The notes under the pieces: model-generated | Databases searched by the model: none | What the model saw: the letters and a program-made list of their open reading frames with translations, nothing else | What the model was told of the DNA's origin: nothing | Source of the DNA: Anaeramoeba ignava BMAN | Lineage: Eukaryota; Protista; Anaeramoebae | Length of the DNA: 64,000 bases | Reading direction: 5' to 3' | Assembly: GCA_028826165.1 (NCBI GenBank) | Contig: JAPDFW010000061.1 | Coordinates: 248,001 to 312,000, forward strand | Position numbers and translations under genes: made by a program | Part shown: positions 6,880 to 54,600 of the stretch, one piece after another | Numbering within the stretch: the first letter of the stretch is position 1 | Layout of the letters: the number at the start of each line of letters is the position of its first letter

Positions 6880-9800
6880 ATGAACCCAAACGATGAAGAT
6901 TTTTCTCCAGTTGAAGCCTTACTTGACTCAGCAAGTCATGGCGATCTTCAAGGCATTCAAAAATTAATTGATGCAGGTGTTGATGTTAACAGTCAAAATG
7001 AAGTAATAATCAAAAAAAAAAGAAAAAAAAAACAAAATCAAAATAACGATCAAAATAAAAAAAAATTTTTAATTAAAATTTTTTATTTGAAATTAAATTT
7101 TTTTTTTCTTTTTTTTTTAAATAATAAAATAATAAAAGTGGGTAAAAAAAAAATCTTTAACGAATTATAAAAATATCGAAATAATAAATTTATTCTGTTG
7201 ATTTTAATTTAATATTAAAAAGGAAGAAACAGCTCTTTTATTAGCAAGTATTAATGGTCATTCGAGTGTTGTTAGTTCACTTATAAAACTTGGAGCAAAT
7301 ATTAATCATCAAAACCAAGTAAATTTCAATTTGAAAATCAAAAGCTAAATAAAAATCAATTTGAATTTGAAAATCAAAATCAAAATCTAAATCTAAATCA
7401 AAATCTAAATCAATTTCAAAATCAATATCAATTTCAAAATCAATATCAATTTCTAAATCAATTTCTAAATCAATTTCTAAATCAATTTCTAAATCAATTT
7501 CAAATTCAATTTCAAAATCTAAATCAAAATCAATTTCAAAATCAATTTCAAAATCAATTTCAAAATCAATTTCAAAATCAATTTCAAAATCAATTTCAAA
7601 ATCAATTTCAAAATCAATTTCAATTTTAAATTCAATTTTAAATTCAATTTCAATTTCAAAATCAAAATCAATTTCTAATTCAATTTCTAAATCAATTTCT
7701 AAATCAATTTCAAATTCAATTTCTAAATCAATTTCAAAATCAATTTCAAAATCAATTTCAAAATCAATTTCTAAATCAATTTCAATTTCAATTTCAAAAT
7801 CAATTTCAATTTCTAAATCAATTTCAATTTCAAAATCAAAATCAATTTCAATTTCAAAATCAAAATCAATTTCAAAATCAATTTCAAATTCAATTTCAAA
7901 ATCAAAATCGAAATCAATTTGAAAATCAATTTCAATTTCAAAATCAATTTCAAAATCAAAATCAATTTCTAAATCAATTTCTAAATCAATTTCAATTTCA
8001 AAATCAATTTCAAAATCAAAATCAATTTCAATTTCAAAATCAAAATCAATTTCAATTTCAATTTGAAAATCAATTTCAAAATCAAAATCAATTTCAAAAT
8101 CAATTTCTAAATCAATTTCAAAATCAATTCAATTTGAACATCAATTTCAAAATCAAAATCAATTTCAAAATCTAAATCAAAATCAATTTCAAAATCAATT
8201 TCAAAATCAATTTCAATTTCAAAATCTAATTCAATTTCAAAATCAATTTCTAAATCAATTTCAAAATCAATTTCAATTTCAAAATCTAATTCAATTTCAA
8301 AATCAATTTCTAAATCAATTTCAAAATCAATTTCTAAATCAATTTCAATTTCAAAATCAATTTCAATTTCAAAATCAATTTCAAAATCAATTTCTAAATC
8401 AAAATAAATCAATTTCAATTTCAATTTCAAAATCAAAATCAATTTCAAATTCAATTTCTAATTCAATTTCAAAATCAATTCCAATTTGAACATCAATTTC
8501 AATTTCAAAATCAATTTCTAAATCAATTTCAATTTGAACATCAATTTCAATTTGAAAATCAATTTCAAAATCAAAATCAATTTCAAAATCTAAATCAATT
8601 TCAAAATCAAAATCAATTTCTAAATCAATTTCTAAATCAATTTCAAAATCAATTCCAATTTGAACATCAATTTCAAAATCAAAATCAATTTCAAAATCTA
8701 AATCAATTTCAAAATCAATTTCAATTTCAAAATCAATTTCTAAATCAATTTCTAAATCAATTTCAAAATCAATTTCAAAATCTAAATCAATTTCAAAATC
8801 AATTTCAAAATCTAAATCAATTTCAAAATCAATTTCAATTTTAAATTCAATTTCAAAATCAATTTCAAAATCTAAATCAATTTCAAAATCAATTTCAAAA
8901 TCAATTTCAAAATCAATTTCTAAATCAATTTCAAAATCTAAATCAATTTCAAAATCAATTTCAAAATCAATTTCAAAATCAATTTCTAAATCAATTTCAA
9001 AATCAATTTCAAAATCAATTTCAAAATCAATTTCAAAATCAATTTCAAAATCAATTTCTAAATCAATTTCAAAATCAATTTCTAAATCAATTTCAAAATC
9101 AAAATCTAAATCAATTTCTAAATCAATTTCAATTTCAAAATCAATTTCTAAATCAATTTCAAAATCAATTTCAAAATCTAAATCAATTTCTAAATCAATT
9201 TCAATTTCAAAATCAAAATCAATTTCAAAATCAATTTCAATTTGAAAATCAAAATCAAATCCAAAATCAATTTCAAAATCAATTTCTAAATCAATTTCAA
9301 AATCAATTTCAAAATCAATTTCTAAATCAATTTCAATTTCAAAATCGTTTTTGTTATTTAGTTTGTAAGTTAATTTTTTTCAACATTTTTCATTCAAATA
9401 TCAATCAAAAAAATTATTTATAATTAATTTTTTTAATATAATAGAAAGAAACAGCTTTAATTCTTGCAGTAACAAATGGACATATTGATGTTGTCAAAGA
9501 ACTTATGAAAGCAAAAGCTGATAAAAAAATTGCTGATCAAGTAAAAATTAAAATTAAAATTTAAATTAATTTATAAAATTAAAAATTAAAATTAAAATTA
9601 AAATTAAAATTAAAATTAAAATTAAAATCAAAATCAAAATTAAAATTAAAATTAAAATTAAAATTAAAATTAAAATTAAAATTAAAATTAAAATTAAAAT
9701 TAAAATTAAAATTCATTTATAAAATTAAAATTAAAATTAAAATTAAAATTCATTTATAAAATTAAAATCAAAAATTAAATTAATTTATAAAATTAAAAAT

Positions 9801-10153
9801 TAAAATCAAAAATTAAAATTAAAATTAAAATTAAAATTAAAATTCATTTATAAAATTAAAATTAAAATTAAAATTAAAATTAAAATTAAAATTAATATTA
9901 AAATTAAAATTAAAATTAAAATTAATATTAAAATTAAAATTAAAATTAAAATTAAAATTCATTTATAAAATTAAAATTGTTTTTTGATTTCTTGTTTTTT
10001 TAGGATGTAAAAAAATTCTATTCCAAAAAATATTTTCTTTTCTTTTAATAACTTTTTTTTTTTATTTTTTTATTTCATTTATTATTTTGTAAATAGGGAA
10101 ATACTGCTATGGATTATGCTAAAAATAAAGCAATTCAAGATGCTCTTAAATAA
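6880..10153 (+). CDS. Small ankyrin-repeat protein (126 aa), 7 exons including three 3-nt microexons
   Basis: Exons 6880-7002, 7139-7141, 7223-7318, 9362-9364, 9445-9540, 10004-10006, 10097-10153. Repeats: ETALLLASINGHSSVVSSLIKLGANIN, ETALILAVTNGHIDVVKELMKAKAD, GNTAMDYA. Confidence 0.9.
7330..9345 (+). repeat. Intronic 12-mer repeat (AATCAATTTCAA/AATCAATTTCTA)n
   Basis: About 2 kb tandem array inside the ankyrin intron 7319-9361. Confidence 0.9.
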
Positions 10154-10516
10154 CTCAAAAATTTTTCTTTTTTTTTTTTTAAAGAAATCTTTTTGTTTTT
10201 TTTTTGTTCCACTTTTTTTTTTCTTCTTTTTTTTTCAAATTACAAAAAAAGCAAAATCGAAAAGAAAAAAATAAAGAGAAAAAAAAATAATTAAATTTTA
10301 AATCTAAAAAGAAAATTAATCAAAATGGTTTTTATGTCAAAATTGTTTTTTTGTTTTGTTTTGTTTTTTGTTTTTTGTTTTTTGTTTTTTGTTTTTTGTT
10401 TTGTTTTGTTTTTTGTTTTGGGGTTAAAAAAAAATGATCAATAAAAAAAAATAATTAAATTAAAATTTTTCAATTTCATTTTTTCATTTTTTCATTTTAA
10501 CTTTTCCAAAAAAAAA

Positions 10517-13500
10517 ATGGATTTATTAATCAAACAACAAAAAACAAACAAAGCACTTGAAACAATAATAAAAAAACAGATCTATTCATTAGGAAGATAT
10601 TTTGGGACTTTAAACATACTAGATCGTGAAGGAAAAAAGCACAAAATTGGGTATACAAACGGGGACACACTTTACGAAGCAGCAAAAAAAGCAGGATTGA
10701 ATTCTGTTCTTGGTATTTGTGGAGGAAACATGAGTTGTGCAAGATGCCAAGTTTACATTGATGAAAAAGATCTTCCGCGCCTTCCTCCAATGTCACAACA
10801 AGAACAGGACGCATTGACTCATGCTTATAAACCTAATCCCCGCTCCCGTTTGGCTTGTGGTTTGGTTTTAGACACAAATACAAATGGATTGTCTATAGAT
10901 TTGGCTCCTTTGAAACCTAAAAAAATTCGCAAAAAAATCCAAAAACCTAAAGAGACTTCTATTACTATTACTGATTCTTCTGTTGTTTCTTATCCATTTT
11001 CTGAACCTTTTCTTTCGTTGAATCCTGATTCTTTGGAGACTGTGGAAAATTATCAAACTGTGAAAATTAAGGAAGGAATTCATTGGTGTGGTGTTATTGA
11101 TTGGGATTTGCGAGATTTTCATGGTAGGATTTATTAATATTTATTAAATATTATTGAATACTATTGAATTTTGAATATTATTAAATATTATTAAATATTG
11201 TTGAATATTATTGAATATTATTGAATACTATTGAATATTATTATTATTATTATTGAATATTATTGAATACTATTGGATATTATTGAATATTATTGAATAT
11301 TATTGAATATTATTGATTATTATTAAATATTTATTAAATATTTATTAAATATTATTAAATATTATTAAATATTATTAAATATTATTAAATATTATTGGAA
11401 TATTATTATTATTATTGAATATTATTGAATATTATTAAAATATTTAAATAAATTTATTAAATATTATTGAATATTATTGAATATTATTAAAATATTATTG
11501 AATATTATTAAATATTATTAAATATTATTATTAAATATTATTGAATATTATTGAATATTATTGAGTATTGAATATTATTGAATATCTCTATTAAATATTA
11601 TTAAATATTATTAAAAATATTTATTGAATATTGTTGAATTTTGAATATTATTAAATATTATTAAATATTAAATATTATTGAATATTATTGAATATTATTG
11701 AATATATTATTAAATATTATTGAATATTATTAAATATTATTAAATATTATTGAATATTATTAAATATTATTGAATATAATTATTGAATTTTGAATATTAT
11801 TAAATATTATTGAATATTATTGAATATTATTGAAATATTATTGAATATTTTGAATATTATTGAATATTTTTGAATATTATTAAATATTATTATTGATATT
11901 ATTTATTAAATATTATTGAATATTATTGAATAATATTATTGAATTATTAAATTAATATTAATTATTATTAGATATTATGATTATTATATTATTATTGAAT
12001 ATTGATTATTAAATATATTATTGATATTATTATTAAATATTATTGATTAATGATTATTAATTAATTATTATTATTAATTATTATTGAATATTATTAAATA
12101 TTATTAAATATTATTATTAAATATTATTAATTATTATATATTATTATTGAATATTATTGAATATTATTATTGAAATATTATTGAATATTATTGAATATTA
12201 TTGAATATTATTGAATATTTATTAAATATTATTAAATATTTATTAAATATTGTTAAATATTTATTAAATATTATTGAATATTATTGAAATATTGAATATT
12301 GTTAAAATATTTGTTAAATATTATTGAATATTATTAAATATTATTAAATATTATTGAATATTATTAAATATTATTGAATATTATTAAATATTATTGAATA
12401 TTATTAAATATTATTAAATATTATTGAATATTATTGAATATTATTAAATATTATTAAATATTATTGAATATTATTATTAAATATATTATTAAATATTATT
12501 AAATATTATTAAATATTATTGAATATTATTTAAATATTATTATTATTATTGAATATTATTAAATATTATTAAATATTTATTAAATATTTATTAAATATTA
12601 TTAAATATTATTAAATATTATTAAATATTATTAAATATTATTAAATATTATTAAATATTATTGAATATTATTAAATATTTATTGAATATTATTAAATATT
12701 ATTGAATATTATTGAATATTATTAAATATTATTAAATATTATTAAAATATTATTAAATATTATTATTAAATATTATTGAATATTATCAAATATTAAATAT
12801 TATTGAATATTATTAATTATTGTTAAATATTTATTGAATATTATTGAATATTATTAAATATTATTGAATATTATTAAATATTTATTAAATATTATTGAAT
12901 ATTATTGAATATTATTAAATATTTATTAAATATTATTGAATATTATTGAATATTATTAAATATTTTGGAATAAAAAAGGTTATCGAACAACAAGAGGAGG
13001 AACTTATAACTCCTATTTCATTCAAGACGAAGAAAGTGTATTAATTGATACAGTAAAACAACCATTTGTAGAACGCTATCTCAAAAAAGTCAAATCATTA
13101 GTAAATGGAGATCTGAAAAAAATCAAATATCTCGTTTGTCAACACGTGGAAATGGATCACAGTAGTGCATTACCGTCTGTCATGCAAGCATGCCCCCATC
13201 TTACAGTAGTTTGCACAGAATTATGCAAGCAAGTTCTCGAAAAACATTATGACATTTCCCAATGGAAATTTAAAATTGTGGCTGACGGAGAAACACTTAA
13301 ACTAGGAAAAAGAAGCTTGACATTCGTTGCAACGCCACTTGTTCATTGGCCCGAATCAATTGTCACTTATATGCCGGAAGAAAAAATACTTTTTTCAATG
13401 GACGCTTTTGGACAGCATTACGCAACAACTAAACGGTTTGATGATGAAGTTGATTTCTCAATTGTTCTTGATGAAATGAAGATCTACTACGCAAACATTT

Positions 13501-14117
13501 TAATGCGACTTTCAGTTCCGATCAAAAAGGCGTTAAAGAATCTAGGAACACTTGACATTTCGACGATCTGTCCAAGTCACGGAGTTGTTTTCCGGCAAAA
13601 AGAAAACATTTCCAAAATCATTGAAAAATACACAGACTGGGCAAATTTCAAGAAGAAACCTCACGTGATCTTATTCTACGACACAATGTACAAGTCAACA
13701 CAAAGAATGATCAACGAAGTAGCTGCCGGGATCAAAGAAGTGTCAGGTGTTACTTTTGACATTATGAACGTTCGCACAAATCACATCACAGACATAGCAA
13801 CTGGCGCATTGGACTGTGCAGCACTTGTTGTAGGAAGCCCAGTTTTCCAGGAACACTCAATGCCAGAAGTCATTTGCGCTCTATCTTACCTAGAAGCTCT
13901 TAGACCCCTTGACAAGCTTGCTTTGATCGTCAGTTCTTATGGTTGGAGTCAATCTGGTGCTGCTAATGATATCTCCCGTTATCTGGACTCCATAAAAGCA
14001 AAACAAATTAGAGATCCTATTTTTTCTTTTTATCGTCCTACTAATTCTCTTTTGAAAGAGTGCAGAGATGCCGGAAAACAATTGGCTTTGGAGGTTAAAA
14101 AAGTTTGCAATATTTAA
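10517..14117 (+). CDS. fprA: Flavodiiron protein with N-terminal adrenodoxin-type [2Fe-2S] ferredoxin and putative organellar presequence (581 aa)
   Basis: Exons 10517-11123 and 12979-14117 (phase-1 GT-AG intron). Ferredoxin motif C-x5-C-x2-C-x36-C (CGGNMSCARC...SRLAC). FDP motifs GIHWCGVIDWDLRDFHGY, GGTYNSY, HVEMDH, VHWPES, MDAFG, CPSHG, then flavodoxin (YDTMYKST, VGSP, SYGWS). Confidence 0.92.
11135..12965 (+). repeat. Intronic 10-mer repeat (ATATTATTGA/ATATTATTAA)n
   Basis: Fills the intron 11124-12978. Confidence 0.9.
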
Positions 14118-14279
14118 TTCTTTCTTTTTGATCTTCTTTTTTTTTCTTTTCTTTTTTTTTTGAAAGAAAAAATGTGGAACGGAAAAAAAACAAACAAACA
14201 AACAAACAAACAAACTTTTTTTTTTTTGAAATGAATCAAAGTCAAAAAATTTGATTAAATAAAAAAAAAACAAATTCAA

Positions 14280-51657: not shown

Positions 51658-54600
51658 ATGGAAGCTGAAAAAGTAAAAGAGAATAAATTTTTTTATAAAC
51701 ACACAAAAAACACAATCTAAATCCAAAATAACCACACAATAAACATAAATAATAACCACACAATAAACATAAAATAACCACCAAATAAATTATTAAATTG
51801 ATTATTAAATTAATTATAAAATTGATTATTAAATTGATTATTAAATTAATTATAAAATTAATTATTAAATTGATTATTAAATTGATTATTAAATTGATTA
51901 TTAAATTGATTATTAAATTAATTATAAAATTAATTATTAAATTGATTATTAAATTGATTATTAAATTTATTATTAAATTAATTATTAAATTTATTATTAA
52001 ATTGATTATTAAATTGATTATTAAATTAATTATTAAATTAATTATTAAATTAATTATTAAATTGATTATTAAATTAATTAATAAATTAATTATTTATTAA
52101 ATTGATTATTAAATTGATTATAAAATTGATTATTAAATTGATTAATAAATTGATTATTAAATTAATTATTAAATTGATTAATAAATTTAATTATTAAATT
52201 GATTATTAAATTTATTATTAAATTAATTATTAAATTGATTAATAAATTTAATTATTAAATTGATTATTAAATTTATTATTAAATTTGATTATTAAATTGA
52301 TTATCAAATTGATTATTAAATTGATTATTAAAAAATTGATTATTAAATTGATTATTAAATTGATTATAAAATTTAATTATTAAATTGATTATTAAATTGA
52401 TTATTAAATTGATTATTAAATTAATTATAAAATTAATTATTAAATTAATTATTAAATTAATTATTAAATTAATTATTAAATTGATTATTAAATTAATTAT
52501 TAAATTTATTATTAAATTGGTTATTAAAATTAATTATAAAATTGATTATTAAATTGATTATAAAATTAATTATTAAATTGATTATAAAATTAATTATTAA
52601 ATTGATTATTAAATTTATTATTAAAATTAGTTACAAGCAGTTGAAATTCAGAAAAATTTTTATTGGGTTGGAGCTTTAGATCCTGATATAAGAATATTTG
52701 ATATTGTGATGTATTGTGAATTTGGAACAACATACAATTCATATTTATTAAAAGGAAGTGAAAAAACAGCACTTATTGAAACAGTAAAAGATACAAATGA
52801 TTCATACAGACAATTTGAAGAACGTTTGAATTCAATTTTGAAAAAAGGAGAAAAACTAGATTATGTTATTCATAATCATGCTGAACCAGATCATTCAGGT
52901 GCTTCTTATAGACTTCTTTCTGAAAAATTCCCTGAAGCAACTATTATAGCTTCAAGAAATGGTGTCGAGAATATTAAACATATGTATGGTGATGATGCTG
53001 AAAAATTCAGATTTTTGGAAGCTCGTGATGGTTTAATTGTTCGTCTTGGTGGTTTCACTCTTTCTTTTATGATGAATCCTTTAGGTTTGATAAATCAAAA
53101 TTTAAATCAAAATCAAAATCAAAATCAAAAATCAATATCAATATCAATATCAAAATTAAATTCAAATTCAATATCAAAATCAAATTCAAATTCAAATTTA
53201 AAATCAAAATCAAAATCAAAATCAAAATTAATATCAATATCAAAATTAAAATCAAAATTAAAATCAAAAATCAAAATCAATATCAAAATCAAAATTAAAA
53301 TTAAAATTAATATCAAAATCAAAATTAAAATTAAAATTAATATCAAAATCAAAATCAAAATTTAAATTAAATCAAAATCAAAATTTAAATTAAATCAAAA
53401 TCAAAATTTAAATTAAATCAAAATCAAAATTTAAATTAAATCAAAATCAAAATCAATATCAAAATCAAAATCAATATCAAAATTAAAATTAAATTCAAAA
53501 TCAATATCAAAATCATTTAGTTCATTGGCCAGATACAATGTTTACATATTGTCCTGAATTAAAAACTATATTTACTTGTGATCTTTTTGGTTCACATTAT
53601 TCTTCTCCAAAAATATTTAAAGATCTTCTTGATGAAAAAGAAACAGCAGATATGTGGAAAGCAGCAAAAGGATCATATTTTGATCCGATTTTTGGACCAT
53701 ATAAGAAATATGTAGTACAAGGATTAGATAAAATTAAAGAATTAGAACTTGAGATGATATGTTGTGCACATGGACCAGGTAAAAATAATTAAAAATCAAA
53801 ATCAAAATTAAAATCAAAATCAAAATTAAAATTAAAATCCAAATCAAAATTCAAAATCAATTTTAAAATCAAAATTAAAATTAAAATTAAAATTAAAATT
53901 AAAAATTAAAATTAAAATTAAAATTAAAATTAAAATTAAAATTAAAATTAAAATTAAAATCAAAATCAAAATCAAAATCAAAATTCAAATCAAAATCAAA
54001 ATCAAAATCAAAATCCAAATCAAAATCAAAATTCAAAATCAAAATCAAAATTAAAATAAAAATTCAAATCAAAATCCAAATCAAAATTCAAAATCAATTT
54101 TAAAATTAAAATTAAAATTAAAATTAAAATCAAAATCAAAATTAAATTCAAAATAAAAATCAAAAATAAAAAATATTTGAAAAAAAATAGTAATTAGAAA
54201 AAATATTGAAGAATACATGGAAAAATATCGAGAATGGAGCAAAATAACATTGCCAAAAAACAAAGTATTAATAGTTCATATAGCAGCTTATGGATTCACA
54301 AACCGTATGGCAACCCTTATCAAACAAGGATTGGAATCAATTGGCAAAGATATTGAAGTAAAGATGTTGAACTTCTTAGAAACAACAGAAACAGAAATAA
54401 TGAAGGAATTAGGAGAGTCACGAGGATTATTGCTTGGCTCACCAACACTTCTGAGCGATGCAGTACCACCAATTATGAAAATTGCAGCGAATTTAAACCC
54501 AGTTGTGCATGGAACGGATCCAGAAACGCGACTTGTTGCTTGCAGTTTCGGATCATACGGATGGAGTGGGGAAGCAGCTGACAATATCTGCCAACGACTC

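Follow-up and report, generated by a model that had tools for sequence, protein, structure and literature searches.

In the hydrogenosome of Trichomonas vaginalis, a class A flavodiiron protein (FDP) studied by Smutna et al. in 2009 reportedly receives electrons from pyruvate:ferredoxin oxidoreductase (PFO) or NADH by way of ferredoxin, and is said to reduce O2, not nitric oxide (NO). There the electron donor and acceptor are separate proteins, whereas in the gene that we describe here they are fused. This gene is located at positions 10517-14117 (+) of the window, by which we mean the whole stretch of 64,000 nucleotides that was analysed, namely positions 248,001 to 312,000 of the forward strand of contig JAPDFW010000061.1 (assembly GCA_028826165.1) of Anaeramoeba ignava BMAN. 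It encodes 581 residues in which a [2Fe-2S] ferredoxin is followed by an FDP core (Fd-FDP). We consider it likely that this expressed nuclear gene encodes a hydrogenosomal enzyme that reduces O2 to water and is fed by its tethered ferredoxin.

The class B flavorubredoxin (Escherichia coli NorV), and FDPs of classes B-H more broadly, resemble the A. ignava protein in that a one-electron metal-centre donor is fused to the FDP core, with a shorter electron path. In two sources on FDP classes (PMC6033852; bioRxiv 2024.04.03.587993), the extra modules, namely rubredoxin, short rubredoxin, NROR and flavin reductase, come after the core, behind the flavodoxin domain, with a C-terminal Fer4_19 Fe-S domain in class E. 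A [2Fe-2S] ferredoxin is not among the class modules given there, and it is such a module that stands at the N-terminus in A. ignava.

An organelle-targeted FDP fused to ferredoxin was reported from Stygiella incarcerata, and confirmed by PCR, in Leger 2016, where the fused ferredoxin is suggested to stand in for rubredoxin as the donor (PMC4989108). Under 'Other Functions and Pathways', the same paper mentions a 'C-terminal ferredoxin domain' unique to S. incarcerata (PMC4989108). In the deposited sequence (ANM86846.1, 'Flavoprotein A/ferredoxin'), unlike in that text, the ferredoxin is N-terminal, and the fusion is not unique, being found in Cantina and Anaeramoeba too. Furthermore, a 2026 preprint on Anaeramoeba pumila lists, as part of hydrogenosomal oxygen defence, a 'Flavodiiron protein (Fd-FDP)' for which it gives a putative targeting sequence, places PFOR and [FeFe]-hydrogenase in the organelle, and cites the organelle proteomes of A. 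ignava and A. flamelloides (10.64898/2026.04.11.717937). The 2024 Nat Commun genome paper lists no FDP in its supplements. The ferredoxin-FDP fusion is already known, in protists since 2016, and it is rare. The sequence-only reading that preceded this analysis had suggested a possibly undescribed FDP class, which fails in the light of Leger 2016, the A. pumila Fd-FDP and the GenBank entry KAJ5076357.1. It had also named, as grounds for giving that idea up, that the architecture be already common in databases; the fusion is indeed in databases and literature, but it is rare there. Our work rediscovers a known Fd-FDP and brings a modest new evolutionary lead, the new elements being purifying selection on the ferredoxin, a moderate grouping of the cores (78/91) and the non-monophyly of the fused ferredoxins.

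Gene structure and domain order

The A. ignava gene is nuclear and is composed of two exons, with the following features.

10517..11123 (+), exon 1: codons 1-202 and the first base of Gly203, from the open reading frame (ORF) list and the sequence
10517..10606 (+), leader: putative hydrogenosomal presequence, residues 1-30, ending ..SLGRYF|G directly before the first ferredoxin strand
10607..10915 (+), [2Fe-2S] ferredoxin of adrenodoxin/putidaredoxin type: residues 31-133, with Cys68, Cys74, Cys77 and Cys114
10916..11050 (+), flexible linker rich in Lys, Ser, Thr and Pro: about 45 residues (134-178), disordered by prediction
11051..11123 (+), start of the FDP core (metallo-beta-lactamase-like) within exon 1: ..IHWCGVIDWDLRDFH-G
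11124..12978 (+), intron: GT..AG, phase 1, 1855 bp, 5.8% G+C
12979..14117 (+), exon 2: diiron domain followed by the flavodoxin-like domain, ending with TAA
12979..13652 (+), diiron ODP/metallo-beta-lactamase-like domain: H258-x-E-x-D-H263 at 13143-13160
13653..14117 (+), flavodoxin-like flavin mononucleotide (FMN) domain and TAA: residues ~428-581, with no C-terminal extension

Exon 1 starts at the first ATG past an in-frame stop located 25 codons upstream, and encodes the leader, the ferredoxin and the linker together with about 23 residues at the beginning of the FDP core. The leader ending SLGRYF|G, the ferredoxin, the K/S/T/P-rich linker and the FDP core described in the sequence-only reading were all recovered. 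Homology searches were run per exon, while full-length comparisons used the public protein KAJ5076357.1 (P0274, 581 residues), to which the two translated exons are identical by a local equality check. Alignments with structures of the Protein Data Bank (PDB; FprA, ROO, FlRd) start at query residues 180-183, facing chain residues 2-3 in most entries and chain residue 12 in the Giardia FDP (2Q9U), and NCBIfam flavorubredoxin models match residues 181-202 in exon 1. The core begins at about residue 180, inside the exon that also encodes the ferredoxin, and thus the fusion is independent of the splice call, as had been proposed.

The EukProt transcript ORF of A. ignava (P0001, c17705_g1_i1.p1, 510 residues) shares 100% identity with the translation of exon 2 and is continuous over the exon junction (..DFHG|YRTT..). 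Since one exon encodes both the ferredoxin and the beginning of the core, and P0001 reads across the junction, the fusion is real at the DNA and RNA level. P0001 is flagged 'complete', yet it begins at Met72 of the genomic frame, which lies within the ferredoxin and past Cys68. Were translation to begin at Met72, where this sole transcript-derived A. ignava ORF begins, the ferredoxin would be a decaying remnant, and the product would in effect be a class A FDP that carries a non-functional N-terminal extension. We find this extremely improbable, because the open frame extends from 10517 and retains all four Cys, the stretch ahead of Met72 aligns well with the orthologues, including the ..LGxCGGNMSC.. 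motif, and the GenBank model comprises the full 581 residues. Moreover, a transcript-derived ORF of A. flamelloides spans its full 568 residues, and the ferredoxin is under purifying selection, as detailed below. The short ORF probably reflects a 5'-truncated assembly in which the first Met was taken as the start, which is the simpler account.

The cysteine spacing of the ferredoxin is 5/2/36 (C-x5-C-x2-C-x36-C), as expected of the cluster motif. Searches of the PDB with phmmer returned adrenodoxin/putidaredoxin-type ferredoxins at E = 2e-15 to about 1e-6, the best matches being 3LXF (2e-15), putidaredoxin and human FDX2 (to 2e-11), while the T. vaginalis ferredoxin (1L5P) matched weakly (E = 1e-3). 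The NCBIfam fdx_isc model scores 26.8 bits on the module, and the Cantina orthologue carries PF00111 in its precomputed annotation. The AlphaFold2 (AF2) model has a mean predicted local distance difference test (pLDDT) of 90.9 and displays two folded units with a disordered stretch, residues 142-176, between them; the pLDDT is 91-98 in the ferredoxin domain and below 50 in that stretch of the linker. The four cluster cysteines are invariant in the five fusion proteins, across three eukaryotic supergroups. Between two A. flamelloides paralogues, with synonymous divergence (dS) near saturation, the ratio of nonsynonymous to synonymous rates (dN/dS) reaches about 1.3 in the linker, whose sequence and length also differ among orthologues, and stays at about 0.08 in the ferredoxin. 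This comparison, which is new here, indicates that the ferredoxin module is under purifying selection. Because its cysteines are invariant and its dN/dS is 0.08, the module qualifies as functional by evolutionary criteria. The fusion of donor and acceptor in a single polypeptide, a hydrogenosome-type [2Fe-2S] ferredoxin with an FDP core, as put forward in the sequence-only reading, is upheld, and its architecture is conserved.

One A. flamelloides model, KAJ6253057.1 (P0124, 526 residues), is short of 39 residues, among them the fourth cluster cysteine and the Lys-rich linker. In the other A. flamelloides assembly, P0271 (565 residues; an allele or paralogue) has those 39 residues with the fourth cysteine, and the gap probably results from an intron wrongly predicted within the low-complexity linker.

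The FDP core is complete. Its diiron domain passes without interruption into the flavodoxin-like domain, and each of the seven diiron ligands (H258, E260, D262, H263, H325, D344 and H403) is in place and invariant in the five fusions. The Pfam ODP model reaches 93.8 bits (cut-off 27.2) and Lactamase_B 39.6 bits. The core matches Moorella FprA (305 bits), the Giardia FDP (268 bits), D. gigas ROO and E. coli FlRd in alignments that all reach the C-terminus and end at residues 573-578, and the match to the NCBIfam FprA-type model extends from position 27 to position 395 of its 396. The flavodoxin-like domain is modelled with an alpha/beta topology at pLDDT above 90. There is no C-terminal rubredoxin with two CxxC pairs, the protein stopping 3-8 residues past the flavodoxin-like domain. 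The gene structure, the domain order and the intact ligands are directly supported, as are the conserved architecture and the purifying selection on the ferredoxin.

An exhaustive phmmer search with exon 1 against 1.8 billion representatives found the same N-terminal module in three long proteins, which by cluster correspond to Stygiella incarcerata ANM86846.1, a Cantina marsupialis transcript ORF and A. flamelloides proteins. Their lengths are 584 residues in Stygiella, 555 in Cantina, and 568, 565 and 526 in A. flamelloides, which has 2-3 fusion paralogues. The A. ignava protein can be aligned over its whole length with the fusions of Stygiella, Cantina and A. flamelloides. When a profile of the five fusions was searched against 5.8 billion proteins, only the fusion lineages scored 888-1037 bits, and the score fell to 596 bits at bacterial class A FDPs of ~400 residues. 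The exon 1 and profile searches did find other fusions, confined at full length to these lineages. When a word index was queried with the ferredoxin part of P0274 for long proteins with a similar N-terminal module, nothing but the transcript ORF of A. ignava itself came up, which reflects the limited sensitivity of that search and not an absence.

The Stygiella protein shares with that of A. ignava a leader, an adrenodoxin-type ferredoxin, a Lys-rich linker and a class-A-like core in the same order, with the cysteines and diiron ligands in common and 37% identity overall. Stygiella is however a jakobid, from another supergroup, and its fused ferredoxin is nearest to Stygiella's own free ferredoxin and not to the Anaeramoeba module. 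The fusion of Cantina marsupialis is a stramenopile transcript ORF in which the four cysteines and seven diiron ligands are invariant. The A. flamelloides proteins KAJ3446720.1 and KAJ3439185.1 are orthologues or paralogues with the same architecture and 49% identity. The nearest unfused cores are class A FDPs from bacterial anaerobes of Kiritimatiellota/PVC type, such as Pontiella FprA, which are 46-50% identical over ~395 residues and have no ferredoxin, leader or introns.

At the gene level, A. flamelloides has at least two paralogues, and three introns, whereas A. ignava has one copy and one minisatellite-filled intron. This single intron has 5.8% G+C and consists almost wholly of a 10-bp minisatellite (11131-12964 by Tandem Repeats Finder, period 10, about 180 copies of TTATTAAATA, 82% matches), and the G+C content is 30-42% in the exons against about 5% in the flanks and intron. 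The first A. flamelloides intron interrupts the same Gly codon, in phase 2 instead of phase 1, and measures 221 bp with 26% G+C; two further introns follow. The intron at this shared Gly codon identifies the A. ignava locus as a resident eukaryotic gene. Contamination or a bacterial origin of the locus was considered and is ruled out by the extremely AT-rich eukaryotic flanks, the spliceosomal intron common to A. flamelloides and the 550-kb nuclear contig.

Proposed role in the hydrogenosome

We infer that the protein is organellar, that electrons move in the direction and between the partners set out below, and that its substrate is O2 and not NO. The single polypeptide would be made in the cytosol and imported into the hydrogenosome under the direction of its leader. 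Its [2Fe-2S] ferredoxin, hanging on a flexible tether of ~45 residues, would take low-potential electrons from PFO or from the ferredoxin/hydrogenase pool and hand them singly to the FMN of the flavodoxin-like domain. From the FMN, electrons would pass to the diiron site of the partner subunit in a head-to-tail FDP dimer, where O2 would be reduced to water. Such removal of O2 would shield the O2-sensitive PFO and [FeFe]-hydrogenase. Fd-FDP could serve as a self-contained test of [2Fe-2S] ferredoxin versus rubredoxin as the physiological FDP donor in hydrogenosomes. A complex prediction with two FDP cores and the ferredoxin domain gave a score of 0.00, which bears neither way on docking.

The ~30-residue leader, which probably directs hydrogenosomal import as judged from its predicted properties, is an addition relative to bacterial ferredoxins of ~105 residues, whose residues 3-6 align with query residues 31-34. 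It contains six K/R against two D/E, with an Arg at -3 of the proposed cleavage site, and a helix is predicted by AF2 at residues 2-25 (pLDDT 60-73). It thus has the features of an organellar presequence, a net positive, helical N-terminal extension with Arg at -2/-3, as the sequence-only reading had proposed, though an atypical one. The alternative is that the protein is cytosolic, the N-terminal 30 residues being no signal and the ferredoxin being fed by cytosolic PFO or other reductases. For this speak the MDLL start and two acidic residues of the leader, unlike the ML(S/T/A) of relatives, and a pyruvate pathway that in A. pumila is partly cytoplasmic too (10.64898/2026.04.11.717937). We nevertheless regard a cytosolic location as unlikely, since the length of the extension is kept in all fusions and in free hydrogenosome-type ferredoxins, the leader has a net positive charge and is predicted to contain a helix, and an R-x-(F/L/M) motif, also present in paralogues and orthologues, is found directly ahead of the ferredoxin fold. 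In addition, the A. pumila Fd-FDP bears a putative mitochondrial targeting sequence in the preprint, and a targeting peptide was predicted for the Stygiella fusion in Leger 2016.

GenBank names KAJ5076357.1 and its A. flamelloides orthologues 'anaerobic nitric oxide reductase flavorubredoxin', and reduction of NO, as in this name, would be the alternative activity. The top NCBIfam models are indeed NorV-type equivalogs (320 and 288 bits), the best PDB match, Moorella FprA, is deposited as a nitric oxide reductase, and many FDPs reduce both gases. However, the NCBIfam scores are far under the curated cut-offs of 635 and 711 bits, and therefore the A. ignava protein is not a NorV equivalog. It also has no rubredoxin domain, its last domain being the flavodoxin-like one. 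The GenBank name is therefore a misnomer, which hides the ferredoxin fusion and is misleading. Lys229 and Tyr440, which are located at the positions of D52 and S262 of E. coli FlRd, agree with the Giardia FDP, an O2 reductase that has Lys and Tyr there, and not with the E. coli Asp/Ser. To our knowledge, the characterised protist FDPs are O2-selective. With these points counted against it, we judge NO reduction very unlikely as the main activity, and retain O2 reduction as the likely one.

Several observations weigh against the proposal of an organellar, ferredoxin-fed O2 reductase. When the Lys/Tyr pair was placed in the E. coli FDP, selectivity was unchanged (PMC13133992); the pair is thus not sufficient for selectivity, and Lys229/Tyr440 provide only a hint of the substrate. 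Two of the profile scores are below their thresholds, marginally so for Pfam Fer2 on the ferredoxin (20.2 bits, cut-off 21) and more widely for Pfam Flavodoxin_1 alone (15.1 bits, cut-off 25). The A. ignava transcript ORF P0001 covers exon 1 from M72 onward only, not codons 1-71. The A. ignava leader starts MDLL.., with its two acidic residues, whereas all relatives start ML(S/T/A/R), with ML(S/T) in the Fd-FDPs of A. flamelloides and A. pumila; this makes targeting of the A. ignava copy less certain. Finally, we found no Fd-FDP with biochemical, spectroscopic or localisation data.

Origin of the fusion

Besides the fused module, A. ignava has three free-standing [2Fe-2S] ferredoxin genes, listed here by locus.

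L002, 1483-1887 (-), free ferredoxin gene
L003, 1489-2022 (-), free ferredoxin gene
L004, 1366-1821 (+), free ferredoxin gene

Two of them encode hydrogenosome-type ferredoxins with ML.. leaders, and the remaining one a Yah1/adrenodoxin-type protein (..CEGNLACSTCH..) that groups with mitochondrial iron-sulphur cluster (ISC) ferredoxins in the tree. The nearest relative of the fused module is a free A. ignava ferredoxin of 134 residues, with 45-48% identity. We take the FDP core to be of bacterial type, and the fused module to be a duplicate of the hydrogenosome-type ferredoxin that the lineage also retains as a free gene.

As had been suggested in the sequence-only reading, separate phylogenies were built for the two parts, and they disagree. 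In the ferredoxin tree (41 rows, 119 columns, careful search), a single clade (95/90) unites all fused modules with the hydrogenosome-type ferredoxins that Anaeramoeba and Stygiella have as free proteins. Within it, the Stygiella fused module pairs with the Stygiella electron-transport ferredoxin (100/96), while the Anaeramoeba fused modules nest among the free ferredoxins of Anaeramoeba (97/87). A single clade of the five fused ferredoxins is rejected by the approximately unbiased (AU) test (p = 0.001, delta lnL 41). Two metagenomic ferredoxins of 113-114 residues (P0139 and P0144) also fall in the hydrogenosome-type clade, which is otherwise eukaryotic, beside the Anaeramoeba sequences, and may come from uncultured anaerobic protists.

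For the core, a quick tree from an 83-row alignment and a careful 44-row tree, whose bootstrap is not fully settled, were computed. The five fusion cores group together in every tree (SH-aLRT 93 and 91, UFBoot 78), a moderate grouping with long branches in a sample without other eukaryotic FDPs, and the trees resolve no specific bacterial donor for the core. The disagreement between the core and ferredoxin trees calls either for repeated fusion from local ferredoxins, or for one fusion followed by gene conversion or fission. The position of the fused ferredoxins, each with the free ferredoxin of its own lineage, suggests recurrent fusion or gene conversion.

One reading, to which we give a little less than even confidence, is that the fusion was built more than once. 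Anaeramoebae and Stygiella/Cantina would each have tethered their own hydrogenosomal ferredoxin to related bacterial-type cores, in a convergent manner, and the product would form a further FDP class. The pairing of the Stygiella module with its own free ferredoxin, the position of the Anaeramoeba modules inside the free-ferredoxin clade of that lineage and the AU rejection all argue against a single origin. If true, unrelated anaerobic eukaryotes would have arrived at a convergent donor-acceptor enzyme, and the class would be the sole one with an N-terminal [2Fe-2S] module. The conflict between the trees suggests that lineages under oxygen stress may have arrived at this fusion more than once.

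Alternatively, the fusion could have arisen once and spread among eukaryotes, with the likeness between fused and free ferredoxins due to gene conversion or to the budding of free genes from the fusion, a possibility to which we give somewhat less than even credence. The grouping of the five cores in every tree is what one fusion would leave, but it is moderate, with long branches, and other eukaryotic FDPs are outside the sample. All fusions agree in the order of their domains and in the way in which the Lys-rich linker begins; this Lys-rich beginning is however simply the ordinary C-terminal tail of free ferredoxins. The common clade of fused and free hydrogenosome-type ferredoxins likewise speaks for a single event.

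Further FDP-like loci and flanking repeats

At least five further FDP-like loci, of differing architecture and 25-35% identical to the Fd-FDP core, are present in the A. ignava genome, and include a tandem pair of multidomain FDPs of ~900 residues. Their positions (C denoting contigs) are as follows.

C64:276319-281188, further FDP-like locus
C75:115256-116377, further FDP-like locus
C115:441096-441968, further FDP-like locus
window ~52700-53850, further FDP-like locus

Simple repeats flank the Fd-FDP gene at 9579-9962 (-), 10340-10420 and 14190-14215 of the window. They comprise runs of (AAATT) type, which translate into (NF)n ORFs, (GTTTT/GTTTTT)n just 5' of the start, and (CAAA)n just past the stop.

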